Positions 33,968-64,000 of a stretch of 64,000 bases of DNA are shown piece by piece. Location of the stretch: contig OZ218956.1 in the NCBI GenBank assembly GCA_965112735.1, positions 496,001 through 560,000 on the forward strand, written 5' to 3'. The stretch comes from Phaeosaccion multiseriatum (Eukaryota; Protista; Ochrophyta, other classes). Every line of letters starts with the position of its first letter. The stretch's first letter is position 1. A program made the position numbers and the translations under genes. The notes beneath the pieces are model-generated. The model worked only from the letters and a program-made list of their open reading frames with translations. It had not been told where the DNA came from and ran no database searches.

Positions 33968-36790
33968 TCAGCAGTCGGCGTAGGGCATTGGTGTGAAAGG
34001 TTTCAGAGGTACACCGGCGAAGTGCCACGTCCCCTTCGTTGGGTCTTCGTCTCCGGCAGCAATAGGGCCAGGGGATGGAGGCGGTCGAATCACTTGCCCC
34101 CTGCTGGGTCGAGAGTTGTCCCCCAAGATACTACCGGGCTTCACAATGCCGCCCCCTACCAAACGACTCTCCCGTCCCAGGACGACCGAGTGGCCGACCT
34201 TGATTGGGAGTAGCTCAATCTCTCCCATTTGGATGTTGTGCGGAGTTATCGCGACACCACTCGAGATCATCGCCCCGTCGCCAATGGTAAGCAGCCCAAA
34301 CTCTGATACCCATCTTGACTCGAAGTATGCGGACATACCAACAGAGGCACCCATCAGCCTGAGCAAGAGGGGGTATAGTGGCGTGCCCAGCGTCCATCCA
34401 AATCCCAATCGATCGGCCCCCAAGGACTCCAAAAAAAGGTACATCCTATACACATCTGCTCTCCCACTCTCCGATCGAAAAGACCCTTCGCGCTGAACCT
34501 GGCCAAAGACCTTCTTGAATGCGATGGTTGAGCACCCTACGGCAGCTTCAAAGAGGAGCAGCGCCACGGGCAAGAGCAGAGTCTGCGTATCAAAGCGGCT
34601 CCAAACGGCGCGCTGTGGCCCGTCCCGCAGACTTCCACTGGCGTAAAAGTCGGTGATGGGCTGCTGGAAGAGCTCGAGGAACTCGTACGCAATGATGGCG
34701 CAGCAAAACAGCCTGGCAAGGTGCACTGCCACAACAATCACCATGAACAGAGTACGCCTTCCTGTGATTCGTCTCGCCAGCTCGTGCGTCTCCTCGTCCA
34801 CTCGGTTGCGCGTTGTGGCTGATGAGGCCCGTGCTGGCTGTCCTGTCATGATCGCGCCGTCGGGCACTTCGGTCCCCTCAGGCACGCAGGAGCAGGAGGT
34901 GACCAACACGCGACGTCCCAGGGAGGAGCCCCCCCCGATGATGGTCTTGTCCCCTGTGTTGACTCCCTCACCCACGGAGCAGCCCGTGATCACGCCGTCA
35001 CTGAACCCCACCACGGCATTCACATTCAAGCGATAAGCATGGCAAGAGTCGGAGGGAAGGGGTTCGCAACGGGTTTGAACGGTGCATGCGTACTCACCTC
35101 GTTTCTGTGTTGATTGTTGTGCCACTCCCGAAGAACGTGTTGACCCCAATGTCCAGCGTGTCAGGGTCAGAGAATCCAACACCAGCGCCGAGGCTCGCAC
35201 TCCAGCTGATGGAAGCCCCAAGAAGCTTGTACCACAGGACAATGAGCTCTGTGGAGGGGAAGAAACTCATAAAGAACCGCTGAAGAATCCCCGTCAACCG
35301 ATTGGCAGTCTCGCGGCGGGCGAGGGCGAAGGTAGACATGTCGCTCGTTCGTTGGCCCTTGCGCAGCTTGCCGACAAGCACCCACTTCAAGGCCACGCCC
35401 ACGATCACGGCAACAGTGCCAATGATTGCCAGCCAAATGAAGAGCAGGAGGATGCCAGTGTAGCGCCCGGCGCCGACGACATTGGAAGCTTCAAGCTGGA
35501 AGACTGTCGCTGCGAGAAAGCCTGGCAAGAACGTGGTCGCGATGCCGGCAAAGATCAGCACGAGCTGCATCCAGCCCTTCGATCCGAGCGCGGGTGCTCT
35601 CAGAGGGGGCTGTTGGGGCGGCATGCGCATCGCCGCTGGATTGCCCTCATACACCCGCTGTTTCGCGAGCCGCGTGCCTGAGGGTACAGTCGCTTTCACT
35701 CCGATGGTCACACCGTCCTCCAGCACTGCTCCTCCATGGACAGAGCTCGATGCGCCCAAGTCGCAGCTCGACCCTATCACCACCTGTGTGTAAGGAACAT
35801 TGGGTGAGGCATCGTCAAGACAGAGCATCGGCGGCCAGGCTGTGTGTAGACAGCGTAAGTCAGGACATGTTTGCAGATTCTGTGTTCGCATAAAAATGAT
35901 CAGTTGAGTTGGCATTGACGGGCACGATCTGTGCCTGCAAGTACTCACCTTGTCGTAGCGAATTTTCATGTCCCCAATCAGGGTTTTGGGGGATATCATG
36001 GCACTCCCGCTCACAGAGCAGTTATCGCCGATGTGCACCAAGTCAAACTCGCTCATGCGCACCTGCAAACGAGACGCGGAACGAGAGACTTTAGCAACCC
36101 CCAGCATTGATTCCGACCCTCCGCACGCAAAGTGGCTTACCCCTGTGAGATCGCAGCCGGTGCCGATGTGCGCCCCCATCATGCGGTAGAGAGGCACGAG
36201 CACGACCGAGTCCGGGAAGAGAATGGCCACCAGCGGGTAGAAGAAGTAGCCCAGGTATGTATCTACGACCCAGCTGAGAAGGTAAGGGAGGCGGCAAGTT
36301 GGGGGGGGGGCATGAAGGAAATAGCCCACATTGGTATCGTAGGAAGAGCCGCTCGGCGTCTTTGGCTACGATGCCTGCCTGAAGCCAAGAGGAGACCTCA
36401 AACCACTCATCACTCACCATCGGAAGTGGTACGTACTGTAGACCTTGTACACGCCCACTTTATATCGTCCCACAATGCTCCACTTCACCGCGGGGGCAAC
36501 CAAGAGGGACAGGACTACGAAGACCAATCCAGAGAGAAAGCTTCCGAGGAGGATCGCAAGATATTCGTTGTTGAAGGGGGTGTTGCGATTGAAGAGAGCG
36601 TCCACGCGAGGACTGCTTAGAGCTTGCTGAGTCTCAAGAAGCTTCAAGCCCTGGAAGAGGTTAAGCAGAGGGAACCCCGACACTGCGGTCCCCACACTCA
36701 ACGAAATCTTCCCAAGCAAGACGACGACGACGAAAATGATGACCAGCAAAGCCGCCCCCTGCGCTGCGGCCACAGTCGCCAACCTGAAGG
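33968..36790 (-). other. Pls/NRPS-terminal-type domain: TM segments alternating with three hexapeptide-repeat (left-handed beta-helix) units
   Basis: Three repeats of the pattern [TM, TM, K(W)xxxG, xxxxGAxIG, LxxIGD, hexapeptides, GxP]: VKWSIVGRYK/YRMMGAHIG/LVHIGDNC/YEGNPA, LKWVLVGKLR/YKLLGASIS/LDIGVN/MTGQPA, FKKVFGQV/LRLMGASVG/LLTIGDG/FAGVP. Confidence 0.85.
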
Positions 36791-39700
36791 CCGTGTAGCC
36801 CAACTCGGCCTTGCGATCAGTGGGCATGTGCGCGTCGGACGCGAGCCACTTCCGACCAGCGTTGCTGACAGCCCCGCTCGGCGCAAGCTTGTCATCTGCG
36901 GCCGCTCGAGCAGCGCCCACATGCGTCAGGCAGGCCTCGTGGACGAAGCTCGAAAATGCATCCACGGTCGGCATGTCAAAGAGCGCCGCGGGCGTCACCA
37001 CAGACAGGAGCCCGTTGACCTTGTCACCACCGCTCTCCAGATGAGCACTTGTCTGCTCGTCTCTCCCCTCGATGATGTTGACAACCCGCACTACAAACTC
37101 TGCGGCAGCCACCGAGTCGTCAGCCAGTACCTCCAGTATATCAAGATTGCGAGCATTGAGATCCAGAGCTGTCTCTGAGCCGCCAGCTGACGGGCTTCGG
37201 CTTTGACTTGCAATTTGTTGCTCGAGAGCCTCCAAAACAATACGTCGCACTGCATCCTCTCCCTTTGCAACAGGTAAAGCCCGCAACGTGCCCAACTTTC
37301 CTGGAGCTCGAGCAGTGCCACCCCCGTCCTTCACACAGGCCTCGCTGATGAAGCTCGAGAGCGCACTCAAGGTCGGCATATCGAAGATAGCGGCAGGAGT
37401 GATATGGGATCGGAGGCCCTCGCCCTCTCTACCCACATGCTCATCGCCTTCGTCTTCGATAGCGTCAACCACTCGCGTCACCATCTCTGCGACGGCGACA
37501 GAATCGTATGCCAACGCTTCCAGCACGTTCGGGTCCGGCTCACTGGCAAATCCCCCCTCCGGAGCACCGGAGACACTCTCTACGGCGCTGATGACGATGC
37601 TCCTCACGGATGCCTCTCGTTCCAACGGAGACATTGCCTGCAGCTCACTCAGCCTCCCCGGCGCATCGAGATGCTCCGCAACATCACCAGCGGCAGCAGG
37701 GAGAGCGTGGGGCAGCGGGAAAGAGCGGCGCGTCTGATATCCTGTCCATGCCCTTCTCTGCGGCTTGGCAGTAGCCACGGCGAAGTGCTGTGCCAATGCG
37801 TCATATGCTGGCGTCGGCCCCTGCAGAATGGTATGTGCATTAAATCCACCCAACCCAAACGAGTTGACCCCGGCAACGAAGCCCTCTCCATCACTGCGAC
37901 ACGCGGCCAAAGCCGTCATCTGCGTGGGGAGTACTATGGGCAGCCCCTCCAGCTTCAGCATTGGATTGATCTCCTTGAGGTGCAGGTTTGGAGGTGCTGC
38001 CCCATGGTGCAACACCAAGATAGCCTTGATGAGCTGCGCCATTCCTGAAGCTCCCTCCATGTGGCCCAGTGTCGTCTTCACAGTGCCCACCACAAGAGGA
38101 GCCTGATGGGGTCGACCGTCTGCATACACGGCCTTCAGAGCGCCTGCACAAAGCAGGGGGGGGAGAGGAGAGGAGCGGAGAGGAGAAAACATCACTTTAC
38201 GATAGGACGTGATGCCATCGCTTCGAGCTCCACTACAACGAGCAAGAGGACCAGCGCAGGCGCTGCAGGAGCTCAAGCGGGGCTAACCTACCCATTTCGA
38301 TGGCGTCTCCCGTGATGGTGGCCGTGGCGTGCGCCTCTACATAGGACACGTCACTGCCCCTGTAGCCCGCGCGAGAGAGAGCCGCAGCAGCCACGCTCTT
38401 CTGCGCCACTCCTTTGGGGGCGGACAGGGAGCTGCTGATCCCACTGTGGTTGACCTCAGTCGATTTGATGGTGGCAAGGATAACGTCGCCATCGCGCTTC
38501 GCATCCACGCAGCGCTTCAGCACCACCGCTCCGCAGCCCTCGGCTCGAACGTATCCGTTCGCTGCGGCGTCGAAAGACTTGCAGCGTCTGAGGGGAGGTG
38601 AGGAAAGGAGGTATTGGGTGGGCAGCGCAGGTAGGTAGGTCAAAGGGTTAGAGAGCGGAAAGACGCGGTCAGTCTATGCCTGTGGTAAGGTCTGACTCAC
38701 CCTTTGGACAGTAGTCCTGCCTTGTCGAGTGCTCCGAAAGCCTGGCGATGCAGCAGAAGGTTGACACCCCCCACCACCGCGCCGCTGCATTTGCCCAGCA
38801 CAAGATTGTTGCAAGCCGTGTCAAGTGCCACAAGAGCAGAGGGGCATCCTGTGTCGATGGTCTGGCAATTGCCCGTGAGGCCCAGCGTGTGCGATACGCG
38901 GCCCGCCACGCACGCTGCGCTCCCCCCGACGAGGGAGTATGCGCTTTGCTTTGCGCCGCTCTCCTGCTGAAGCATGCTCCACTCAGCTCCGGACTTGCCG
39001 ATGAAAACCCCGATATCCAGGCCATGCAGACTCTTTGGCCCCTCGTCGAAACCCGCCCTGTACAGGGCCTCGTATGCAGTCTCCAGCATGATACGCTGGC
39101 TGGGGTCGAGCGCTTCCGCCTCCGCTACAGAGATGCGGAAGAACGCATTGTCGAACTTTTCGACCCCATCGATAAAGCCACCTTTGCAGAACGGAGGGGG
39201 GCGTAGAGGGAGAGGGTGAGGGGAGAGTCAGCGGGGGCGAGAGGAACGGAGAGAGAACGAGAGGAAGAGCGAGAGGGGGGGGGGCATAGGGAGAGAGATA
39301 GAGAGGGAAGAGAGAAAGAGAGAGAAAGAGGGGGAGTGTCGAGGAAGCCCCGGCGTCGTGGGGGAAGTCGACGAGATTCACACGGCCCAGTTCGCCAATA
39401 GGGCAATCAACTTGATCAACACCTATGCAATGCCTTCACCTTGGATTCCGGCCCCCAGACCTCGCTCGGGCGGCGCTTCAGAGACGCAGTCCTGCTGGGC
39501 GCACAGCTTGGCCCAGAACGCCTCCGGGCTGTCGCAGCCCCCCGGGAAGCGGCATGACATCCCGATAATCGCAATGTCCCCGTCGGCAACTGCATGTCGC
39601 AGAGAGGCGGCAGCCGACACATTGCCGCTCGCGCTTCCCTCCTCCCCGAAGAGCACTTCCTCGACATGCGCTGCCAGCAAGGCGGGTGTGGGGAAGTCGA

Positions 39701-42700
39701 AGAACGCTGTAGTCTCAATTTCAAAGTCCCTCCCGTCCGCGCTGCTGTACAAACGGTCCTCCAGCGTCTCCGCCAGCTCGGCCATCATCACTGAGGTCAT
39801 GCCCGCCTCCATGAAGCGGTCGTCGGCGGTCAGATCCTGATTCTGCCTCACCTGCACGGCAATCGCAAGGACCTTCTCCAAGATCATCGCCAGCCTTTCC
39901 TCCCTAGTGAGTTTCTCCATAGTACGCATGGCCAGACCGCCTTCTAGCCCTTCTCTCCCATCAGGGACCTCGCCTTCGACGAAGCGACGTCTTTCCTCAT
40001 CCTCAGGAGCTGAGCGCATGCTGGCAAGTTCCGCAGGAGGAGGGTCCTGTCGGTGGTGGTTGGGGGAGAAACGGCACACGTCAGACAGTGTGAGACTCGA
40101 CGCAAAACCCTCGGCAGACGATTCCCTCACACAACGGCGGATGAAAAAAGCTGTGAAGGGCAAGTACCAAAGCACACAGATTGAAGGGGGGCAAAGGCAG
40201 GGAGAGATGGGCAAAACTGTGGAGGGCAAGTACCAAAGCACACAGATTGAAGGGGGGCAAAGGCAGGGAGAGATGGGCAAAAAAAGAGGCCTCCACTCCG
40301 GCTCACTCGCACCTGTGACATCGCAGTGAGGTCCTCGGTGAGCTCGTGCACCATGTGCAGCTCGCCGGCGTGAAGCGCCTGTCTCGTAGCCCGCCGTCGG
40401 ATCTTGCCGCTCGTGGTCTTGGGGATGGTCTTCTGCTTGACGGCCACCACCCTGGCCGCTCGGAGGCCCAGACAGGACGACACTGCGGCTTGAGCGGCCT
40501 CCACCACTGCCTGTGCTTCACCCTCTCGCTCCTGGCGGATCTCGAACACCACCTCCAGCATGCCGTCCCCTCCCGTCTCATCGGAGGAAAAGGCCGCGAT
40601 GCAGCTCTGCCGAACAGCGTCAGACGCCTCTTGCACGGCGAACTCCACGTCCTGCGGGTAGTGGTTGACCCCGTTGAAGATGATGAGGTCCTTGATGCGG
40701 CCGCAGATGTACAGCAACCCCTCTTCCACAAAGCCCACGTCGCCCGTCCGTAGGTACTGGCGAGGAGGACACAAGCTGTCTCTGCCCTCGGGCCCACCCT
40801 GGAGGGAGAGCTTCGCCTGGAAGACCTCCTTCGACAGCTCTGGCTTGCCCCAGTACCCGGCGGCGACAGAGGGGGAGGAGATCCAGATCTCTCCCGTGGT
40901 TGCTGCTTCACTAACCTCTTCCATGGTGTCGGGACTGACAATTCGAATGTCCGCAAAGTCCGCTCTCTCGTTCGGGGAGCCGACGGTGGTGAGCTCCGGC
41001 CGTGAGAAGGATCGAGTCAGAGCAGAGGCCCAGGAAACTGGCAAGCGCGGGCGAGCGAGCGAGGAAAGACGAGGAGCACATCGGAGAAAATGAGACCAAC
41101 CCTCGCACTCAAGGAGACTACACGAAAATTGGCAATCCTTCGCCACTAGGCAGCACCCTCCTTGCTCTTCACAATGACTACTCACCAAATACCACGTGCT
41201 CGGCGAGCCCATACCCGGATGAGAACCACCCGGGCCGCAAACCGAAAGGCTGGAAGGCCTCCTCGAATCTCTCCACCGTTACTCCTCGAATGGGCTCAGC
41301 CGCGTTAAGCAGAGTCACTACGGAGGACAGATCCAGCTTGGGCTCCTTGCGAGTGCCGCGCACCTTGGCCATGTAGCGGGCGCAGAGGGCGTAAGCGAAG
41401 TCGGGGGCAACGGACCACTCCACGCGGTGCCGAGAGACAAGCTCCAGCCAGAGCAGGGGCCGCCTGATGAAGCTCACTGGGGACATGTAGTGCATGGTCA
41501 TGCCTGTCAGGAAGGGGGTGAGGAGGCCGAGTACGAGGCCTATGTCCTGAGAGTTCAAGAGAGTAGGGAGGGCAGTGATTGCGGCGCGAGTGAGCAACAA
41601 CGAAGGCGAGACGAGAAGCAAAGAAAGCAGAGTCGAGGGGTGAGTGTATTGTGTGTGTGTATGGTGTACTTCATCACGCTTGCTGCTTCCGTCCTGGCCG
41701 CCTGTTTCTCTGTTTCGCCTCCCTCCCTTCGCGTGTCCTCCACGGCCACGCCCTCCTCCCTCGCGCCCCCCCCTCCCTCCTCTTTGGAAATTACATGATA
41801 CTGGGGCAACCACGAGAACCCCGTTGTTGGCACGTTATGAACAAGCTCGGTTGGTGCAGCTTTCGCGATGAGACCCCTCTTGTATGCCTCAGGCTGGTCT
41901 GAGGAAGAGTCTCTAGCTTTGTCCGAGGGCCACAGTTGGGTCATCCCCCCGGGGTGGCAGCCGATGAAGTACACGTTGGCCATGAGCGCTCCGAAGGTTA
42001 CCATGACACCCTTGGGGTCGCCGGTAGAGCCACTGGTGTACTGGAGGAGGGCCAGGTCCTCTTCAGTCAGGCTCGGCTCGTCAAAGCTCCTCGGTGATGA
42101 GGAGGACGATGAGGAGAAGAAGCTCTGGAGCAACCCCCCATCTGTAGCCTTAAAGGCGAGGGCTTTTGGCCACAGCTTGCGGGAGTCAGAGAGCGGATTG
42201 GCCGTGTCCAGCTTGCGCAGAGCTGCGATCTTGGAGTCGGTGAGGCACAGCACGGGCTTGCAGTCCGACACGATCTTGCTCATCTTCGGCAGTGACTTGG
42301 ACAGGGGAGGGACAGGTGGATAAACCATCACCGCCACCACGCCCGCTCTCAGACAGCCCAGGAAGGCTGCGAAGAAGTGCAGACCCGGCTCGTAGCACAG
42401 CACCACCATAGCCCCCTTGGGCACGCCCCACTCCTCGCGCAGCATGCAGGAAATGTTGCCCGCCTAGGGAAGAAGACGGGGTGGGAGAATGATTGTTTAG
42501 CTTGCACCTTAATGATCGCATAGAATGCAGGACTGCAGCAGAAGCAAGCAACTGAGACCAGGAGAAGGACATCACCAAGTACGGAATCCTTGCTCGCTTA
42601 CCTCGCCCCACATGCGCTTGAAGCTGTACCTCTCCGCCTGCTTGCCCTTTCCATCATACCAAAAGGCGAAGGGATTGTCGCCGAGCTCAGTCGCGATCTC

Positions 42701-54700: not shown

Positions 54701-57700
54701 TTGGCTCCCATGCTGCTCAGCACAGGGTTGGGACCCACCTCAACAATGCTCAGGTCAGCCCCCCTCCCGTCTCCCATCCAGTGCTCCACCAGCGTGTGGA
54801 TGCCTTCTGCGAACAGCACAGGCGACAGCATGTGTTGCACCCAATACGTCGCCTGCGTCACCTCCTCCCCTCTCACCACCTCACCCGTCACGTTGGACAC
54901 CAGAGGAATGCGTGGGGCGCTGAATGACACCTGCCTCAGAGCCTCCTCCAGCGCACGTACAGCGGGCTCCATCAGAGGAGAGTGGAAGGCGTGCGACACC
55001 TCCAGGGCCTTGCAGCCCACCCCATCAGCCGTGAGCTTCTCCACCACCTTGTCCACAGCGCTGCGAGCTCCAGAGATCACGCTCGCGCTCGGTCCATTCG
55101 ACGACGCCAGCACCACCTCGCCTGCCCCCCCCGCAGCGTCGATGCTTGCCAAAGTCGCCTCCTTGCCTGCCCTCACTGCAAACATCACTCCCTCGCCCTC
55201 GGGGCAGGCCTGCATGGCGGCTCCTCTCATGGCGGACAGCATCAGCCCGTCCTCCAGCGACATGACACCGGCCACGCACGCCGCCACTACCTCGCCCAGG
55301 CTGTGGCCCATCACCATGGAAGGCTCCACGCCCTCCGACTTCCACATCTCACACAGGGCGTACTCCAGCACAAACAGGCACGGCTGGCAGTAGCGTGTCT
55401 CCTTCAGCAGCGCTTGTGCAGTCTCCTCCTCCTCCTCCTCCTCCCCGTCCTCAGCGACCGCTGGGTACATGAGCTCCACCACAGACTTGTCCAGCCAGGC
55501 CCGCTCCATAAGCAGCGTGCTGCACCGCTGCACGCATTCGCGGAACACGCCCTCCTTCTCGTACAGCTCCCTGCCCATGCCCACGTACTGCGAGCCCTGC
55601 CCTGTGAACAAGAACGTCACCGGCAAACTCTTCTTGCTTTGCTGTCCATCCAGCTGCAGCAAGGCTTCGCTCTCGCTCTCCGCTACCATCGTCGGTTCGA
55701 AGCTGCTGAGCACCGCATGGGCGTTGGCTCCTCCCGCGCCGAAGGAGCTGACAGCAGCAGTGCGCCTCTCCCCATCCCTGGCACTTAGTGGCACCATGGC
55801 AGACGGCAAAGTCACCGGAAAGTCATCCAAACGAAGCTCCGGATTGAGCTTCTTCATGTGGAGATTGGGGGAGCACATCCATGCTGAAGGACCAGCAGAG
55901 CTTTGATGAGGCCAGCGATTCCGGACGCAGCCTCTAGATGCCCGATATTGGTCTTCACCGCCCCAACTACCAGGGGCCGATCTTCCTCGCGGCCATTGCC
56001 ATACACGGCCCTCAAAGCACTCATCTCGATGGGATCGCCGAGAGACGTCCCGGTGCCGTGCGCCTCCACGTAATCAACCTCCATACCGCTCAAGCCGGCC
56101 TCCGCCAGTGCCTGCTCCATCAGACGCTGCTGAGCAGTAGGGCTTGGGGCAGTATAGCGCAAACTTCTCCCGTTGTGGTTCGCAGCGCAGCCATTGACGA
56201 CAGCGAGGATGTGGTCGCCATTGGCCTGTGCATCGTCGAGTCGCCTCAGCACCACGGCGCCGCAGCCCTCACCTCGAACATAACCGTTGGCCGCAGCGTC
56301 GAACGTCTTGCAGCGCCTGACAATGAGGAATTGTGGGTTTGCAAAAGTGAAGAGCAGAGAAGAGGTAATCCATCAGCAACAGGGGTCTTTCAGACAGCTT
56401 GTGCCGTTGATCTGGCTCTCATAGCGGCCTCAAGAACAAGTTCCCACCCACACAAAAGAGACACGCACTTACCAGTCAAGACTCAGGAAACCTCCTTCGG
56501 CGAGGGTCTCGAACGTTTGTGTACCCAGCAGCAAGTTGACGCCTCCCACCAAGGCGATGTCACACTTGCCCAGCCGCAAGCTGCTGCAGGCCCCTTCCAG
56601 TGCCACCAAAGACGACGAGCACGCCGTGTCGACACTCATGCTCGGCCCTCCGAGGCCCAGCACGTAAGATATCCGATTTGCCGGACTCGCATTGGACATA
56701 CCCATGACGGAGTATGCACCCTTGTTCGCATCGTCTACCACTGAGCCCCACTCGCTGCCGGACATACCCACGAACACACCGGTGTTGCTGCCATGTAGTG
56801 TATCCTTGCGGTATCCCGCCCTGTGCAGAGCCTCGTACCCCACCTCCAGCATGACGCGCTGATGAGGGTCCATGGCACCCGCCTCGGCCGCAGAGATGCC
56901 GAAGAAGGTGTTGTCAAAAGCCTCCACTCCATCAATGAAGCCCCCTTGCCACTGCTTCTGACCCTCATCGGCCCAGCGTCCGACAGGGCTGGCTCCAATA
57001 CAGTCTGTCCCTGCACAGAGCATAGCCCAGAAATCCTCGGGATTATGAACCCCTCCAGGGAAGCGACAGGCGATCCCGACGACGGCCAGCGGCGCCCTTG
57101 AGTCAGTGCGGTGCGCTTCAGCAGCGATTGCCGCAGAGCGATTGCTAGAGGGTTCCTCTGTCTCTCCAAGCACCTCCGCTTCGATCCACACTGCCAGCGC
57201 CGCTACCGTGGGATATGCGAAGAGCATGTCAGTGGTAGCTACAACCCCGAAGCGAGCCTGTAGCCGGCCGCGCAGCTCCACTGTTGACAAAGAGTCAAGA
57301 CCTGCTTCCATCAAAGGCGTGTTGGCGTCTAGCTCTTCGGCACCATCCCCAAGGAGGTCCTTGGTCATATCAAGCACCGCCAATCGCACTGATTGCTGTC
57401 GTTCACCAAGGGGCAGTCTCAAGAGCGCCTCGCGCACTTCATTGTTGAGTTCGGTGTTGCTGGACGCGCCTGCTGCTGTTGAGACAAGCCCTGACAGCAG
57501 GAACGAGCCGCGGGACGCACCCATGCTCTCTGCAAACTTGCCCCAGTCCATTCCAGGCAGGACGGCCACATCACCCAAATACGCTGACGGCATCGCAGCG
57601 GCATCTAAGGCAGCCATGCCCAGCTCAGCTGACACCGTGCCCACACCCGCCAGCTCCAACTGCTTTTGAACGATATCGAGCTGGGCGGCCATACCCACAT

Positions 57701-60700
57701 CAGCCCACGGCCCCCACTGCAATGACGTCCCTGCGAGCCCGAGGTGTCGCCTGTGCCGCATCAGCCCATCCACAGCCGCGTTCGCCGCAGCGTAGTTGGC
57801 CTGTCCAGCGTTACCCAGTACTCCGGCCATTGATGTGAAGCAAAAGAAGAAGTCAAGGCCACGAGTGCGCCCCTCCTCCTTCGCCCAAGCCAACGAAAGC
57901 TCGTGCAAGTTCACCGCCCCCTGCACCTTGGGTCGGAACACCCTCACCACGCTCTCCGCCGTTTGCTCTCCGAGCAGCTTATCATCCAACACCCCGGCAG
58001 CATGCACCACGCCGCGGACGGGGGCAGCAGAGGCAGCACGCCCCCCAGGCAAGTCCGAAGTGCCTCAGCATCAGCAACATCACAAGTAGGAGTAAGGATA
58101 TTTAGGTCCACGACGTTCCGAAGCTGCTGCCACTGTTCTGTCATGCTCTCGGCGACCTTCCCACTCCTCGACAGCAGCACCAAGTGACGAGCGCCCCTCG
58201 ACGCGAGGTGCTGGGCCGTCACGAGGCCGAGGGCCCCCAGACCGCCGCTGATGACGTACGTGCCATCGGACACCACTGGCACACCATACGAGGGGTTGGT
58301 CAGCACCACCTTGCCCATGTGCTTCGCTTGGCTCATGAATGCCATGGCCTTCTGAGTATCCTCCCTCATGTCAAATGGTATGGTCGGTAAGGGCTTCACA
58401 TTGCCAGACATGCAGTCTTCAGCCAGACGCTGCAGCCCGCCACTGATCCAGCCCGGCTCGCCGGCCGAAAAGTCAGACTCAACCATGCTATCCAATGCCA
58501 GCAGCTCGTACCTCACATCGGGCCGGGCAGTGCGCACCTGGTCGTGACTCCACACGCCTCGCTTGCCAATCTCGACAAATATACCACCCTCGCTGAGCAT
58601 GGCCAGCGAGAAGGGAATGTAGTCTTCACTCAGAGAGTTGAGCACCACGTCCACCTTCATCTCACCCATGGACTGCTTGAACGCCTCCGCGTCTCGCGAT
58701 GAAGCAATGTGCTTCACTCCCAAGCTCCGGAGGAAGTCATGCTTCACAGCAGCACCAGCAGTAGCGTACACCTCTGCGCCGACCCGCTGAGCATACTGCA
58801 CGGCGGCAAGGCCCACACCGCCAGATGCGGCATGAATCAACACCTTCTGTCCAGCCTTGAGGTCGTGGAAGGCCTTCACTACCGTCAAGCACACGGTTGG
58901 AAGTGCAGCGGCCTGCTCGAAGCTCAGCGCCGCCGGCATCATGGCCAGGCACGCGTCCCCCGTCACCAGATGGCTGCGCAAACATCCTCCGTCTGCGAAG
59001 CCATATATGTTATCGCTGACACGAAAACGCGAGCTTCCTCCCACACTGATCACCTCCCCGGCGAACTCGGAGCAGGGATCTCCAGGGTCGCCAGGGTACA
59101 GGTCCAGTACATTCAGCACGTCCCGGAAGTTCAGGCCAACAGCTCTCACTACCACCTCCACATAGCTACCGGTCGGGTCGAGAGGCCGATGTTTGCCAAC
59201 ATCAACATCATCGCGAAGGAGAAAGGCATTGGCTATACTACTTCTTGCCTTAAGCTCCAGGGAAAACGGAAGAGTCAAAGCTGGGTGTGCAAGCTGAGGC
59301 ATCCAGCACTGACCATCGCGTACCCACACATATTCTGTGGTGCCAGGGAAGGCCAAGCCTAAGGTAAGCTCGCTGTCTAGGGACTCCTTGTCGCTCAGGT
59401 CCAACACACTAATCTGCATGTAAGGGTGCTCCATCCTCGCAGTCCGCACCAGACCTGTAACCCAGCTGTGACGCCAGTCCTCGCCGCTTTCGACGCCTCT
59501 CGTCAAGACCGTCAGCGGTACATTCGACGCAGTGGACAGGCTCCTGAGTAGCGATAACAGAGCGTAGACCGCTCGTGCTTGGGGGCTTCCTTCTGTGTCT
59601 TCTTCGTCAGCTCCGGGTATCAGCACGTACAAGACGCGAGCCCACTCGTCTTCTCCAAGAAGAAGAGCACCATCATCCACGGAGGCGTCCATCCCCCCAT
59701 ACTGAGTGTGTACGTGCACGTTCTCCGGAACACAGCGCCGCACTGCAGCAATGATTCCAGTCTCTCCCTCCCTCTCGTGCTGTGGAATAATCACCAGCCA
59801 CTTCTGTGGCGCCGCTGCCTCAGCAGGGTCAGTATCACTACCAGGGGCCTCCTCCTGTGTAGACGGTTCAGCGGCCTGCCACTCCAATGCGTACATTGCA
59901 CGACGAACGGGGCTGACACGTACAAAGTTCCTCGCCCGCTGCACGCGGAAGCCCCGCATCTCCACGAGCACGTCTTCGCTGTCGAAGTCTGCAATGCGGA
60001 TGTCAAACTTGACGCTGTCCGCCACTGACTGGACCTCACTCAGCTTCGTGTGCACCCACACGTTCTTTCCCGTCATGGAGGCGGAAAGCACCACCTCGTC
60101 AAAGCCAGCAGGTAGGAATGGAGAGTTCCCTCCCTCCTTGAGCAGCTTCCTTGGCAGCGCTTGCATGATGGTATGGGTAGCATTGTCCAGCACCGCGGGG
60201 TGCAGAGCAAAGCCCTTCATCTCCCACGGCTCGCACAGCTCCTCATCCATGGCACACACGACCGACAGAACCTCTCCGTCCCCTCCGTACATGTGGCGGG
60301 TCCGCTGAAAGCGGGGGCCGTACTGGAAGCCGGCACCTGCCAAAGACTTGTAGAGCCCACTCGACACGTCCTGCTCGCCAACTCTAGCTCGAATGGATTC
60401 CACGTGCAGCGAAGCACGCGCCATGGTTCGCTCCTTGATAGACACGTGCCTCATTCTTGCCGTGATGCCCTTGTCGCCCGTGGCACCTCCGAAAAACTGC
60501 ATGCTTCCATCTGCCGCGTGAAGGGCGCTCATCCCGGCACAGACCATTGTATGGCGGTTTTGCGCGTGCTCCGTGCCGACCTGCTGGAAACCCTCAATCT
60601 CCAGTGGAACCACAAAGCTGGCTCCTTGCAGGACTACCTGCTGCTCCACTCCGAGCTGTCGTCCTCCTAGAGCAGCGACGACGCCCACTTCAATGTACGT

Positions 60701-63700
60701 CACCCCCGGAATGATCACCGTGTTGTTGACGGCATGGTCCTTGAGAAGGTCCTTGAGGTGAGGGGAGAAGGGGCTGGGGAGGCGCATTCCGTCTCCCTCC
60801 TGGACTACCTCGCCACTCGGCATAAACGCCAGCGGAGGCTTGTACCAAGGAAATGATCGGCGAGTCGGATAAAGCTCACGATGCTCCGGCCCCACTATAC
60901 TGCCCAGGGCTGCTCCAAATGAATCCTCGGAGTTCTTCCCGAGTGTGAGGGAGGAGATCCACGCCAGCCCCTCGCGACGCTCGCACTTGGCTCCCATGCT
61001 GCTCAGCACAGGGTTGGGACCCACCTCAACAATGCTCAGGTCAGCCCCCCTCCCGTCTCCCATCCAGTGCTCCACCAGCGTGTTGATGCCTTCTGCGAAC
61101 AGCACAGGCGACAGCATGTGTTGCACCCAATACGTCGCCTGCGTCACCTCCTCCCCTCTCACCACCTCACCCGTCACGTTGGACACCAGAGGAATGCGTG
61201 GGGCGCTGAATGACACCTGCCTCAGAGCCTCCTCCAGCGCACGTACAGCGGGCTCCATCATAGGAGAGTGGAAGGCGTGCGACACCTCCAGGGCCTTGCA
61301 GCCCACCCCATCAGCCGTGAGCTTCTCCACCACCTTGTCCACAGCGGTTGGAGTGCCAGAGATCACGCTCGCGCTCGGTCCATTCGACGACGCCAGCACC
61401 ACCTCGCCTGCCCCCCCCGCAGCGTCGATGCTTGCCAAAGTCGCCTCCTTGCCTGCCCTCACTGCGAACATCACCCCCTCCCCCTCGGGGCAGGCCTGCA
61501 TGGCGGCTCCTTTCTTGGCGGACAGCATCAGCCCGTCCTCCAGCGACATGACGCCGGCCACGCACGCCGCCACTACCTCGCCCAGGCTGTGGCCCATCAC
61601 CATGGACGGCTCCACGTCCTCCGACTTCCACATCTCACACAGGGCGTACTCCAGCACAAACAGGCACGGCTGGCAGTAGCGTGTCTCCTTCAGCAGTGCT
61701 TGTGCAGTCTCCTCCTCCTCCTCCTCCCCATCCTCAGCGACCGTTGGGTACATGAGTTCCACCACAGACTTGTCCAGCCAGGCCCGCTCCATGAGCATCC
61801 TACTGCACCGCTGCACACACTCTCGGAACACGCCCTCCTTCTCGTACAGCTCCCTGCCCATGCCCACGTACTGCGAACCCTGTCCTGTGAACAAGAACAC
61901 CACTGGAGTCTCTGCTTGCCCCGGATTAGGGCCTGGCGCACCCTCACTCTTCTCCCCATGGCTCCTCAGCAGCGCGTGTGCATTCGTTCCTCCCGCCCCG
62001 AACGAGCTCACCCCCACCAACACGTCTCCCTCGTCCTCCAGCTCCATCATCGCCGACGGGAGCTGCACGTGAAAGCTGTCCATATCCAGCTCCGGGTTGA
62101 TGCTCTCGAGGTGAAGGTTGGCGGGCACGGCGCGGTGCTGCAGCATCAAGACGGCCTTGATGAGCCCGGCAATGCCCGCAGCACCCTCCAGATGGCCAAT
62201 ATTGGTCTTGACTGCACCCACTACCAGCGGGAAAGAGTCGTCACGGTTCTTTCCATACGTGGCCTTCAGAGCGCTCATCTCGATGGGGTCGCCGAGCGAG
62301 GTTCCCGTGCCGTGTGCCTCCACGATGCGTACTTCGGACCCCTCCCGACTGGCCTCACGCAGCGTCGCCTCGACAAGGCTCTGCTGGGCAGCTGGGCTGG
62401 GGGCCGTCAGACGGGCACTGGCTCCATTGTGGTTCACGGCACAGCCTTCAATCACAGCGAGGACCGTGTCTCCGGCAGCGAGGGCGTCATCCAGGCTTTT
62501 CAGCACAACGGCACCGCACCCCTCGCCACGCACATATCCGTTGGCCGAGGCGTCGAACGTCTTGCAGCGCCTGAGAAGGTTAATGGGAACAGAGAAAGTG
62601 TCGTGGATAATTCGCAGCTTGACGAAGTGCACAGAGAGGTCGGCGGCACTCCCTTACTTACAGGTAAGCACCTCGCGTTTGTGGAAGGCGGCAGTGGTTC
62701 ATAGGAGGTAGTGTGAGCGGAACAAGAAGGGAACTACAGGAATCGAAGGCGAGGCAAGCACATCATACATCACAGGAGCAGAAAAACAACACGCAATGTG
62801 GAGCAGCCGGTGCCACGTACCAGTCGGGGGAGAGGAAGGTCCCCGCAATCAATGACTGAAAGGTGCTCTTCCCGAGCAGCAGGTTCACGCCACCGACCAC
62901 TGCCGAGTCGCACTTGCCCAGGCGGAGGTTGCTGCAAGCAGCGTCCAGAGCCACCAGGGACGACGAGCATGCTGTCTGCAGCAACGCGCTGGGACCGCAG
63001 AGACCCAGAGTGTAGGATACGCGATTCGCAATGTTCGAAGCTGTCAGGCCCATTCCGCCGTAGGCGCTCTGAGCAGTGGTATCTCCTGCCACGAAGCCCC
63101 AGTCCGTGTCCGACAAACCCACAAACACGCCGGTGTTGCTGCCCCGTAGGCTGTTCTTGCTGTGGCCCGCGCGATGGAGGGCCTGGAAGGCCACCTCCAG
63201 CATGAGGCGCTGATTGGGGTCCATTGCCTCTGCCTCGACAGCACTGATGCCAAAGTAGGCATTATCGAACATCTCAACGCCCTCAATGAACCCTCCATGT
63301 AGCTGCACCTCGCCCTTATTACTCTCCCACCTATCATTTGGCGCTGCCGTGATGCAGTCTCTGCCCTCGCACATCAACGACCAGAACTGCTCCGGGCTAT
63401 TGGCTCCACCGGGGAGGCGACACGCCATACTCACCACAGCGATGGGGGCTGGAGAGTCCGAGGACAAGTGTTGTCCTGTCAGCACCTTTTTACCCTCCTC
63501 TACATTATCCAGCACCTCAAGAATCTGGGCCTCGAGCCACGCGGCCATTGCAGACACCGATGGATACGAGAAGAAGGCGCCATTCGAAACGGGGACACCA
63601 CACCAGGCCTCGATTCGATTGCGAAACTCCACGGACGCCATCGAATCGAGTCCGGCCTCCATCAAGGGCGTCGTTGCTGCTAAGGTGAAGTCCTCGCCAA

Positions 63701-64000
63701 CACACTCGACTGCCATACCCGTCAGGACTTGCTCGATCCTCTCCCGCCGTGCTGACTCCGGCAAGAGCAGGAGCTCCTCCCGCACCTCGGCGTTGACGCT
63801 GTACCCTCTTGACGCCTCATCATTTTCTCCGCGGTCTGTCAATTGCCCGAGGAAATCGCTGTGCACCGGGTCCAAGCTCGCTCGAAATCTGTCCCACCTC
63901 ATGGCCGGCATGACGGCCACCTCCTGTACAACGGCTTGCGCTTGACTTGCAAGGACGGCATCCAGAGCCTTCATACCTAGCGCCGATGAGATCAGGCCCA
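33968..64000 (-). CDS. Giant hybrid modular type I polyketide synthase (5'-truncated by the window): KR-ACP-[KS-AT-DH-ER-KR-ACP]x3-KS-FAAL-ACP-KS-ACP-ACP-Pls-like TM/triple beta-helix terminus. Introns at 62571-62820, 56317-56472, 50030-50185, 43785-43891, 42464-42601, 41547-41794, 41038-41185, 40047-40312, 39182-39439, 38588-38700, 38144-38291, 36274-36417, 36063-36140, 35784-35948, 35001-35097
   Basis: All 15 GT-AG introns restore conserved motifs across the junctions (e.g. LSxD/KG|RCKTF, WLPQYH|DIGL, YGLAEHVVF|VSW, QG|GFIDG). No stop is met between 64000 and 33968 apart from two 1-bp homopolymer frameshifts (~55870, ~58022). Confidence 0.9.
36930..39900 (-). other. ACP - divergent AT-less KS - ACP - ACP
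   Basis: ACP FMEAGMTSVMMAEL..FFDFPTPALLA. KS with DTGCPS, EAHATAT and TLGHMEGASG. Two related ACPs (LAYDSVAVAE..IFDMPTL and LADDSVAAAE..LFDMPTV). Confidence 0.82.
40155..40284. repeat. 63-bp tandem duplication inside a PKS intron
   Basis: GGGCAAGTACCAAAGCACACAGATTGAAGGGGGGCAAAGGCAGGGAGAGATGGGCAAAA occurs twice in tandem. Confidence 0.9.
40360..42710 (-). other. Internal fatty acyl-AMP ligase (FAAL)-type adenylation domain
   Basis: FFAAFLGCLRAGVVAV, LQYTSGSTGDPKGV, SWLPQYHDIGL, MSPVSFIRRPLLWL, APDFAYALC, NAAEPI, GYGLAEH, GEIWISSPSVAAGYW, LRTGDVG, GRIKDLIIFNGVNHYPQDVE, IPKTTSGKIRR. Confidence 0.9.
43140..44525 (-). other. AT-less KS domain followed by a poly-Gln linker
   Basis: VDTACSSS, EAHGTGT and NIGHMEGASG are intact. 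No GQGSQ/GHS motif follows, and the linker runs directly into the adenylation domain. Confidence 0.88.
44590..50810 (-). other. PKS fully reducing module C (KS-AT-DH-ER-KR-ACP)
   Basis: Same motif set, with a distinct ACP (GLDSLSLEEFRH). Confidence 0.92.
44895..61897. repeat. Tandem direct repeat, period 6286-6288 bp (AT-DH-ER-KR block x3, ACP-KS block including its intron x2)
   Basis: The ORF track recurs at constant offsets (45221/51509/57796, 48371/54659/60945, 49651/55938). Confidence 0.95.
50880..57100 (-). other. PKS fully reducing module B (KS-AT-DH-ER-KR-ACP)
   Basis: Same motif set with KS DTACSSS. Near-identical to the neighbouring modules. Confidence 0.92.
57170..63450 (-). other. 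PKS fully reducing module A (KS-AT-DH-ER-KR-ACP)
   Basis: KS QTACSSS/EAHGTGT/NIGHLE. AT GQGSQ, GHSLGE, HAFHS (malonyl type). DH DHAVNNTVIIPG and HPAVLD. ER LIHAASGGVG. KR SGGLGALG, HAAGVLDD, YAAAN. ACP GLDSL. Confidence 0.92.
63520..64000 (-). other. PKS: end of a KR domain and the ACP of the preceding (out-of-window) module
   Basis: ALGMKALDAVL..AVMPAMRWDRF (KR C-terminus), then PLMEAGLDSMASVEFRNRI...FSYPSVSAMAAWL. Confidence 0.85.

Follow-up and report, generated by a model that had tools for sequence, protein, structure and literature searches.

Gene structure and domain order

The window analysed here, a stretch of 64,000 nucleotides from Phaeosaccion multiseriatum (contig OZ218956.1), carries on its minus strand a very large gene that is clipped by the window edge at 64000 and runs to a stop codon at 33970-33968. 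In our gene model it comprises about 9,212 codons in the window, spliced via canonical GT-AG introns, and encodes in order three fully reducing malonyl modules, a ketosynthase (KS4), a FAAL, an ACP (ACP_F), a further ketosynthase (KS5), two carrier-like repeats and an end with six TM helices and three beta-helix units (Table 1). The Pfam matches, (ACP)-KS-AT-DH-ER-KR-ACP three times, followed by KS, AMP-binding (spread over three exons), PP-binding, KS and hexapeptide pieces, agree with the domain order given in the original prediction. The model, with 15 canonical GT-AG introns, gives 4,742 stop-free codons from 50029 to the gene end. A hidden downstream exon was considered and rejected, as the C-terminal W..G.P motif of the membrane domain family lies 12 residues before the stop. 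The ORFs at 1-33900 contain no trans-AT, PPTase, TE or reductase, and a GT41-like piece was the sole find among them.

Table 1. Positions of the exons, introns and domains of the gene in the window
Feature	Position	Strand	Evidence
ACP of preceding (off-window) module and KS1 N-half, exon	62821..63998	-	Pfam PP-binding 5e-10, ketoacyl-synt 1e-61; donor CTG/GTACGT at 62820
Module 1 exon: KS1 C-half-AT-DH-ER-KR-ACP and KS2 N-half	56473..62570	-	Pfam
Module 2 exon: KS2 C-half to KS3 N-half	50186..56316	-	Pfam
Module 3 exon: KS3 C-half-AT-DH-ER-KR-ACP and KS4 N-half	43892..50029	-	Pfam; motifs GHSLG, HAFH, GGVG, GLGALG, YAAAN, GLDSL, DTACSSS
KS4 C-half, polyQ/Ser-rich linker and first ~45 FAAL residues, one exon	42602..43784	-	translation
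Introns flanking KS4/linker exon	43891-43785, 42601-42464	-	GTAAGT donors
FAAL, three exons	40313..42463 (42463-41795, 41546-41186, 41037-40313)	-	NCBIfam FAAL models
FAAL introns	41794-41547, 41185-41038	-	junctions restore SWLPQYH/DIGLVLG, AEHVVFV/SWAS
Intron before ACP_F exon	40312-40047	-	intron enumeration
ACP_F (Ser codon 39794-39792) and KS5 start	39440..40046	-	Pfam PP-binding 8e-9
KS5 (exons 39181-38701, 38587-38292, 38143 onward)	37812..39181	-	Pfam, translations, junctions, PDB KS matches
Two tandem ~120-aa repeats, probable divergent carriers (Ser codons 37502-37500, 37115-37113)	36918..37652	-	mutual similarity, hhalign
Pls/PosA-type membrane domain: TM1-TM2, LbH1, TM3-TM4, LbH2, TM5-TM6, LbH3	33971..36809	-	TIGR02353, TM helices, fold
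Introns in membrane domain	36417-36274, 35948-35784, 35097-35001	-	
Invariant His of third beta-helix unit, candidate catalytic base	34238..34240	-	codon checked; family alignment

The presence of at least three fully reducing malonyl modules was borne out, with KS, AT, DH, ER, KR and ACP following each other in this order three times (Pfam E 1e-14 to 1e-63 per domain). The modules carry AT GHSLG/HAFH motifs of the malonyl type, DH His and Asp, ER GGVG and KR GLGALG/YAAAN, and the whole set (KS Cys-His-His, AT GHSxG/HAFH, DH His/Asp, ER, KR Tyr and ACP DSL) is that of a type I modular highly reducing cis-AT PKS/FAS. The Cys-His-His triad of the ordinary decarboxylating type is also retained in KS4 (active-site Cys codon 44040-44038, C-half motifs EAHGTGT and NIGHMEG) and in KS5 (DTGCPSA, EAHATAT and TLGHMEG). 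No AT follows KS4 or KS5 and there is no trans-AT within the window; a KR after either was likewise not found by Pfam. KS5 is 55% identical to the gene's own module KS and 41% to the KS of Stygiella; the arrival of KS5 with a foreign cassette was considered, and this comparison is uninformative on the point. The in-window modules add six carbons in total, so the visible PKS part shows no "very long chain" and lends no support to the proposal that one is built here.

Frame breaks and continuity of the gene

The single spliced frame of about 9,200 codons that had been proposed agrees with the length and the GT-AG introns of our model, but it is interrupted by two one-base frame breaks, one in a C-run near 58025 in the KR of module 1, the other in a C-run near 55869 in the KS C-terminal domain of module 2. 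Modules 1 and 2 are 100% identical over the last ~4.6 kb of the module 1 exon, and modules 2 and 3 over the first ~2.5 kb of the module 2 exon, in both cases bar a one-base difference, and each break is a matter of C5 versus C6 run length inside these perfect repeats. Homopolymer runs inside perfect repeats are a classic place for consensus errors, and judged from the repeats both frame breaks are probably assembly errors. As far as can be read from the sequence, modules at 100% identity show a very recent rearrangement.

If the frame breaks were real, the upstream part would be dead, and the locus might not encode one working enzyme. The upstream PKS would then be broken by true frameshifts, or be functionally over at KS4, and expression would be confined to a FAAL-ACP-KS5-carrier-Pls cassette that begins at an internal start, for example the Met at 42760-42758 just ahead of the FAAL N-terminus, the in-frame join being recent and possibly neutral. 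Every frame break does lie upstream of module 3, with the final 4,742 codons intact, and the recent rearrangement of the modules points the same way. The read depth is also suggestive: DNA depth of the FAAL, ACP_F and KS5 exons is 5-60x baseline, with the introns and the KS4/linker exon at baseline, which fits a multi-copy cassette that lacks KS4 and the linker. On the other hand, both breaks sit at a typical site of consensus error, module 3, KS4 and the linker are open over 2,400 codons, and the catalytic motifs of KS4 are all kept. Moreover, a single exon carries both the C-half of KS4 and the N-terminus of the FAAL, connected by an open, in-frame linker of ~140 aa; a stop-free spacer of 150 codons at 60% GC is estimated to occur by chance in less than 1% of cases, which argues against a fortuitous join. 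We consider it rather unlikely that the locus does not encode one working enzyme.

Four sequencing runs from one sample were considered as possible RNA, but over 38001-44000 their depth does not drop at introns and joints of the GT-AG type are absent, and they were taken to be DNA. The one recurrent read joint, 41549/41793, retains 5 intron letters, with sides of 22-26 letters, and is attributed to a paralogue whose intron differs, rather than to splicing. The intron at 40312-40047 contains a 66-nt tandem repeat.

The FAAL, the carriers and the membrane end

The FAAL is identified by NF009124 (3e-43) and NF004509 (4e-42), compared with 1e-15 to 1e-30 for CoA ligases (NCBIfam). NF004509 matches the FAAL exons at model positions 63-191, 219-336 and 381-566; introns divide the domain, which keeps all scores under the whole-protein cut-offs. 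As best match, FAAL also outranks acyl-CoA ligase and amino-acid A-domain models and structures, the top PDB matches being a PKS FAAL domain (7r7e), FadD32 and FadD23.

Two ACPs had been predicted after KS5. Pfam is blind to them (E 0.17 for one, none for the other), but the two repeats found at this place are 44% identical to one another (E 1e-22), and in hhalign they match an ACP alignment at 74% probability (E 2.8e-5), their DS, including the Ser, falling on GlDSl. The repeats are probably divergent carrier domains, as far as these alignments go; their single-sequence AF2 model (pLDDT 49) is unusable.

The arrangement around the FAAL bears similarities to the mycobacterial FadD32 and Pks13, where a FAAL likewise loads an ACP ahead of a KS and the product is handed to an acceptor instead of being hydrolysed off; the TE of Pks13 passes the product to trehalose. 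By analogy, ACP_F could receive a second long acyl chain from the FAAL, which a KS would condense head-to-head (Claisen) with the chain delivered by the reducing modules; the resulting branched or keto product could then reach an acceptor by way of the membrane domain. Such a scheme is consistent with the FAAL matching FadD32-type models and structures best, with its occupying the AT place of the KS4 module, and with the parallel between FAAL-ACP-KS-carrier-transferase and FadD32 plus ACP-KS-AT-ACP-TE. However, Pks13 has an AT and a TE and is soluble or peripheral, whereas at the locus neither AT nor TE follows KS4 or KS5, so that the ACP-KS-AT-ACP-TE order is absent, and an AT or carboxylase for an alpha-carboxy partner is lacking. 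Both KSs have the ordinary decarboxylating triad, KS5 is nearest to the gene's own module KSs and not to that of Pks13, and the FAAL is simply a loader in every relative. A head-to-head condensation of this kind is therefore highly improbable.

The alternation of TM segments with three beta-helix units was confirmed, in keeping with the family layout, in which TM pairs separate beta-helix units of ~180 residues. Hydropathy gives three pairs of hydrophobic helices, six in all, at domain positions 2-20/67-85, 294-312/330-348 and 534-552/590-608, and the AF2 model (pLDDT 82) shows beta-helix, helical hairpin and beta-helix. The top fold match is PosA (E 3.8e-13, PosA 1008-1332), followed by maltose/galactoside O-acetyltransferases. 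In the profile scan of 33968-36790, a check suggested with the original prediction, all three terminal ORF pieces match TIGR02353 when scored separately (84.1, 48.5 and 12.1 bits; E 7e-24, 4e-13 and 0.04), and along ~690 residues the domain lines up colinearly with family members. TIGR02353 is an NCBIfam equivalog_domain with a curated cut-off of 423.1 bits, and the terminal domain, scored as these three separate pieces, falls under it. No solved Pls-type domain turned up when the PDB was searched by sequence.

Among the family-invariant residues checked (KW...G...R.W, R..G, D, E.D, HLFEDR and G.P), nearly all positions conserved in at least 97% are kept. HLFEDR is changed to HNIQMG, with the His alone kept, and the Asp of E-x-D to Gly. 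The His of the third unit, which is His in 99-100% of family rows, aligns with the catalytic His115 of LacA (1kqa) and is a candidate catalytic base. In the tree, a canonical clade of 42 rows (SH-aLRT 100) leaves out the window domain, P0076, P0114, P0097 and three others; the window domain groups with the FAAL/PKS-linked protist proteins and is paired with P0076, on a long branch, and its placement should be read with that caution.

Comparison with Pls of Streptomyces albulus and PosA of Acinetobacter baumannii reveals the same layout, namely ~700-780 C-terminal residues with six TM in three pairs and three beta-helix units, the whole standing immediately behind a carrier with no TE, and most invariant residues, the unit-3 His included, are common to both. 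At 22-30% identity, the difference lies in what feeds the domain, an amino-acid A-T didomain in Pls/PosA and a PKS/FAAL line here; no amino-acid A domain or NRPS-type AMP-binding_C was found upstream of the membrane end, where FAAL, KS and ACP-type carriers stand instead. The best solved-structure matches to unit 3 are the left-handed beta-helix O-acetyltransferases LacA, Maa and NodL, which likewise use a thioester donor, but are soluble homotrimers of ~190 residues acting on acetyl-CoA, whereas the window domain has three unlike units in one chain, TM hairpins and a predicted carrier-bound donor.

It could be argued that the end domain is a true polymerase, which at the membrane would ligate carrier-bound hydroxy- or amino-acyl monomers over and over to yield a polyester, a polyamide or a wall polymer. 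The epsilon-poly-L-lysine synthetase Pls and the delta-poly-L-ornithine synthetase PosA, the sole characterised members of the family and homologous and alike in fold, are polymerases (PMC10522769), and tandem carriers ahead of a domain predicted to be membrane-seated would suit such a function. With fully reducing modules in view and no KR behind KS4 or KS5, the visible chemistry yields no hydroxyl or amine for self-ligation, and the third unit is closest to single-turnover O-acetyltransferases. The predicted poly-lysine-synthetase-type end stands as far as homology is concerned, but it is non-canonical: since it lies outside the canonical clade and under the cut-off and has lost the acidic HLFEDR motif, polymerase activity cannot be transferred to it. 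A polymerase role is possible but unsupported, and we regard true polymerisation as improbable.

Proposed release of the product at the membrane

A FAAL/PKS line ending in a Pls-type domain was also found in a Stygiella incarcerata transcript (P0114, 4,380 aa), in the Symbiodinium protein "fadD29" (CAE7209835.1, P0097) and in a metagenomic protein (P0076). These uncharacterised proteins likewise have a FAAL(-ACP)(-PKS modules) line with a divergent membrane domain at its end and share the loss of the FEDR motif, but their FAAL is N-terminal, with no reducing modules and KS ahead of it, and identity is ~26%. In every relative the FAAL(-ACP) is the start or loader of the line and the Pls-type domain is its end. 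The claim that no enzyme of such architecture is known stands for characterised enzymes: the literature searched on Pls with PKS, FAAL with TM, and algaenan/diol topics yielded no description of the fusion and no characterised enzyme with the same domain order, and TIGR02353 as a literature topic gave nothing. The relatives show that the architecture as such is more widespread. A representative protein search returned neither the own protein nor close kin above 30% identity, and a word-index search for long relatives with the Stygiella end gave one extra match only. As described by Balzano et al. (2019, PMC6872974), Nannochloropsis PKS-Clade II combines AMP-binding, phosphopantetheine, KS, AT and KR with TM helices; its proposed role, based on expression only, is to provide the 3-hydroxy fatty acids that go into long-chain diols. 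It differs in having AT and KR and no upstream reducing modules, and its TM part is not called Pls-type in that paper.

The best explanation, to which we give about an even chance, is that the locus is a highly reducing cis-AT modular polyketide/fatty-acid synthase fused in frame to a FAAL-ACP-KS-carrier-Pls cassette, with two entry routes and one membrane exit. The last ~2,350 residues (FAAL-ACP-KS5, the two carrier-like repeats and the six-TM/three-beta-helix domain) would be a copy of a cassette of which other protists have variants; the raised DNA depth of the FAAL, ACP_F and KS5 exons fits this as well. FAAL-ACP_F would keep its ancestral job of priming KS5 with a free fatty acid, while the saturated chain from the reducing modules would enter the same end module via KS4 and ACP_F, malonyl being supplied in trans or by a neighbouring AT. 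In place of a thioesterase, the membrane domain would take the chain from the thioester of the last carrier and attach it, through a hydroxyl or amine group, to an acceptor at the membrane, using one active site for transfer, that of beta-helix unit 3. The most likely function is that the chain is released at the membrane by being transferred to an acceptor.

A further reading would be a convergent line, in which a de novo saturated chain and a second fatty acid brought in by the embedded FAAL are joined and then esterified or polymerised at the membrane by a Pls-derived ligase. The mid-line position of the FAAL is best explained by in-frame fusion of a reducing PKS to a cassette in which the FAAL is the ancestral loader, a designed "second chain" step is not needed, and we find the convergent scheme very improbable; an ester, polyester or algaenan product is speculation. 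If the scheme were true, resistant wall lipids of algae or long-chain ester polymers would have a candidate synthase in this enzyme, which would also be the first in the Pls superfamily to polymerise polyketides.

Release from assembly lines is thought to be limited to a small set of domains, namely thioesterase, reductase and condensation-type, and as predicted no TE, R or C domain was found by Pfam in or after the gene. A Pls-superfamily membrane domain that ends polyketide/fatty-acid lines, as seen here and in several protist lineages, would represent a new release route, one that would tie the making of lipids to their export or to a membrane acceptor. The locus also illustrates how such giants evolve, by whole-module duplication at 100% identity and in-frame fusion of a loader-to-release cassette behind a ketosynthase. 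For algal lipids that still lack an explanation, among them long-chain hydroxy acids, diols and wall polymers, it provides concrete candidate genes, and in the invariant His a single-residue handle on the mechanism. The Pls/PosA family would thereby widen from cationic amino-acid polymers to lipids.

Gene structure and fusion of the ligase to KS4

Pfam scans were applied to the large minus-strand ORFs, and introns were placed by enumerating frame-compatible GT-AG pairs and comparing every junction with domain continuity. The resulting model is one gene for a giant PKS, which continues past the upper edge of the window. Its 15 introns (97-266 nt) have donors of the GTAAGT, GTGAGT or GTACGT type and pyrimidine-rich acceptors. 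Four introns fall at the identical place in KS domains (…G|RCK…), and two junctions rebuild the textbook FAAL motifs SWLPQYH|DIGLVLG and AEHVVFV|SWAS. One intron of 165 nt is in frame and stop-free and is therefore invisible in ORF lists; a plain ORF reading would translate it and so add 55 false residues to beta-helix unit 1 of the end domain. The spliced model running from 50029 to the stop codon is free of stops over 4,742 codons, and with the upstream exons it reaches about 9,212, in agreement with the roughly 9,200 codons estimated for the window beforehand. FAAL and ACP_F, the carrier directly following it, are separated by an intron with a perfect-looking 66-nt tandem duplication, each copy of which ends in a potential alternative 3' splice site (acceptor-like CCACAG/TCACAG).

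Features of the PKS gene and its surroundings, in window coordinates
Feature	Position	Strand	Basis or remark
PKS gene	64000-33968	-	continues past upper edge
ACP and KS N-half	upper edge of window	-	Pfam
Three KS-AT-DH-ER-KR-ACP units, then KS4	downstream of edge ACP/KS N-half	-	Pfam
Mosaic of modules 1-3	43892-62820	-	
Frame break 1	near 58025	-	C-run in KR of module 1; shifts frame
Frame break 2	near 55869	-	C-run in KS C-domain of module 2; shifts frame
KS4 C-half, linker and FAAL start	43784-42602	-	single exon
KS4-FAAL linker	42760-43140	-	low-complexity; ten-Gln run, Ser-rich stretches
Met directly before FAAL start	42760	-	
AMP-binding (three pieces), PP-binding, KS5, hexapeptide-repeat pieces	after KS4, in this order	-	Pfam
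Exons of FAAL, ACP_F and KS5	38600-42400	-	raised read depth
FAAL/ACP_F intron	40047-40312	-	66-nt tandem duplication
In-frame intron	35948-35784	-	165 nt
Stop codon	33970-33968	-	
Glycosyltransferase ORF	2362-3384	+	family 41, O-GlcNAc-transferase type, E 1e-37

The ligase is identified as a FAAL by NCBIfam models NF009124 (E 3e-43) and NF004509 (4e-42), acyl-CoA ligase models being far weaker, and its best solved relatives are a PKS FAAL domain (7r7e) and FadD32. In the DNA it is fused to KS4, the ketosynthase preceding it: one and the same exon carries the C-half of KS4 with EAHGTGT and NIGHMEG, a polyQ/Ser-rich linker of ~140 residues and the first ~45 FAAL residues (…LTPLLARAQEIATELGDNPFAFWYDGKGKQAERYSFKRMWGE|AGNISCMLRE…), which are continued by the FAAL profile starting at position 63 (NCBIfam) in the next exon. 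The chance that a spacer of 150 codons at 60% GC is stop-free and in frame by accident is estimated at <1%. The linker has no domain match and no recognisable AT remnant. A gene that is non-unitary or partly dead, with an internal start, is unlikely; the Met directly before the FAAL may nevertheless give an additional product by internal initiation.

The Cys-His-His triad is kept both in KS4 (DTACSSS) and in KS5, the ketosynthase after ACP_F (DTGCPSA, EAHATAT, TLGHMEG), and no AT was found downstream of either. A head-to-head condensation resembling that of FadD32/Pks13 is very improbable, since neither an AT nor a carboxy partner is there for such a step, the triads of both KSs are ordinary, and KS5 is nearest to the KSs of the same gene.

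ACP_F is a clear PP-binding domain (Pfam E 8e-9). KS5 is followed by two repeats of ~120 residues, mutually 44% identical (E 1e-22), which the original prediction had read as tandem ACPs. Pfam recognises neither repeat, but profile-profile comparison aligns them with ACPs (74% probability, E 2.8e-5), with a conserved Asp-Ser on the GlDSl serine and FDMPT on the PT motif of the last helix, and they are probably divergent carriers.

Reducing modules and probable copies of the cassette

Judged by their motifs (AT GHSLG and HAFH, DH His and Asp, ER GGVG, KR GLGALG and YAAAN, ACP GLDSL), the three modules look malonyl-specific and active. Identity is 100% between modules 1 and 2 over the last ~4.6 kb, and between modules 2 and 3 over the first ~2.5 kb; this mosaic suggests that module 2 arose very recently, by unequal crossover or gene conversion. 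Exactly two differences occur within the perfect repeats, both of them C-runs that lack one base relative to the sister module (five vs six C), and these are the two frame breaks of the table. Homopolymer length within perfect repeats is a classic site of consensus errors, and both breaks are therefore probably assembly artefacts, while real slippage may be the alternative. The long saturated chain proposed earlier is not borne out in the window, where the three modules would add six carbons only and no very long chain is shown.

Read depth from four DNA runs over 38-44 kb gave 5-60x the baseline contig depth for the FAAL, ACP_F and KS5 exons, with most contigs 95-99% alike, and baseline depth for the introns and the KS4/linker exon. 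The majority base in the reads departs from the window at several sites, e.g. 40388 and 40329. From these depths the genome seems to contain many near-identical copies of a FAAL-ACP-KS cassette, and KS4 with the linker would be unique to this locus. The position of a FAAL in the middle of the line is therefore best accounted for by the origin of the gene, through in-frame fusion of a reducing PKS with an entire loader-to-release cassette. Pfam found no match in the remaining large ORFs of 1-33900, the glycosyltransferase ORF apart.

The Pls/PosA-type end domain and its relatives

The last three ORF pieces match TIGR02353 with E values of 7e-24, 4e-13 and 0.04, and hydropathy indicates six strong helices in three pairs. 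Once spliced, the end domain is colinear over ~690 residues with proteins of the Pls/PosA family, such as residues 670-1310 of the Sulfuriferula protein P0011. In a 71-row alignment, the positions conserved at ≥97% are nearly all kept (KW, G, R, W, R, G, D, E and the sole invariant His), and the domain deviates in having Gly for the Asp of E-x-D and HNIQMG for HLFEDR. An AF2 model built from a 41-row alignment for the C-terminal 343 residues (pLDDT 82, pTM 0.77) shows beta-helix turns that are followed by a long hairpin of helices, and then a second beta-helix after a helical cap. Among reviewed proteins the model is closest to PosA 1008-1332 (E 3.8e-13, TM 0.64 by query); next in fold come maltose/galactoside O-acetyltransferases and NodL, which also give the best matches among solved structures. 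When the sequence is aligned to LacA (1kqa), the invariant His lies on residue 115, the catalytic base of that enzyme. A search of the PDB found no solved Pls-type domain, and according to Patel and Gulick 2023 (PMC10522769) no experimental structure exists.

The homology to Pls that had been proposed for this domain holds, but membership of the canonical group does not: the TIGR02353 score, summed over the separate ORF pieces, is ~145 bits where the curated cut-off is 423, identity is at most 30% to any of 1.84 billion representative sequences, and in a tree the domain lies outside the 100%-supported clade of 42 canonical rows. Judged by sequence, it is a Pls/PosA homologue and not a canonical member. 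Its pairing with P0076 (SH-aLRT 93), near P0114 and P0097, is tentative, all of these being long branches. The same three proteins are the only matches with a FAAL-like ligase upstream (E 1e-34 to 1e-39), namely metagenomic P0076 (FAAL-ACP-Pls), the Stygiella incarcerata transcript P0114 (FAAL-ACP-KS-AT-KR-ACP-KS-DH-ER-KR-ACP-Pls-type end) and P0097, a Symbiodinium protein named fadD29 (FAAL-like ligase and Pls-type domain). The FEDR part of HLFEDR is also absent from P0076 and P0114. These likenesses suggest a lipid-linked branch within the Pls superfamily, and what it has lost may be residues that Pls uses for its cationic amino-acid substrates.

Two further proteins came up in the searches. 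Metagenomic P0085 (2,739 aa) has AMP-binding, a mid-protein Pls-type domain and then a family-2 glycosyltransferase, an unusual partner. The only other long protein retrieved with the Stygiella end as query was P0183, a hybrid of 3,191 aa from a Logan assembly that combines condensation, AMP-binding, AT, DH and KR domains with a hexapeptide match.

Proposed release and relation to described systems

The most economical reading, we infer, is a release scheme of four steps. The saturated chain of the reducing modules would enter via KS4 and condense with malonyl that ACP_F receives in trans; displacement of ATs in trans is on record for algal PKSs (PMC4661987). KS5 would add one further unit on the tandem carriers, and would still be primed with a free fatty acid by FAAL-ACP_F. 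Finally, the membrane domain would off-load the chain from the thioester of the last carrier onto the hydroxyl or amine group of a membrane-located acceptor, with the His of unit 3, the last beta-helix unit, as base for acyl transfer. Homology favours an iterative polymerase instead, but this is quite improbable given the placement outside the canonical clade, the loss of the motif and the lack of any nucleophile in the visible chemistry.

A full-text literature search found no description of a PKS or FAAL line with a Pls-type end and, as the original prediction had supposed, no characterised PKS of the same domain order. Balzano et al. 2019 drew Nannochloropsis 'PKS-Clade II' as AMP-PPT-KS-AT-KR with transmembrane helices and proposed that it supplies 3-hydroxy fatty acids for long-chain diols; the transmembrane part is not recognised as Pls-type in that paper, and our comparison is by description only (PMC6872974). 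Patel and Gulick noted Pls homologues in lower eukaryotes, in a set limited to 1,100-1,800 residues (PMC10522769), a survey of FAALs from 2026 includes FAAL-PKS fusions of some eukaryotes, none with a Pls-type end (PMC12820801), and a 2026 paper calls the Pls/PosA-like domain 'highly atypical' even among bacteria (PMC13291983). Our statements on the gene past homology are what we infer of its function, and its main interest is as a candidate new release mechanism, one that is not unique to this locus.
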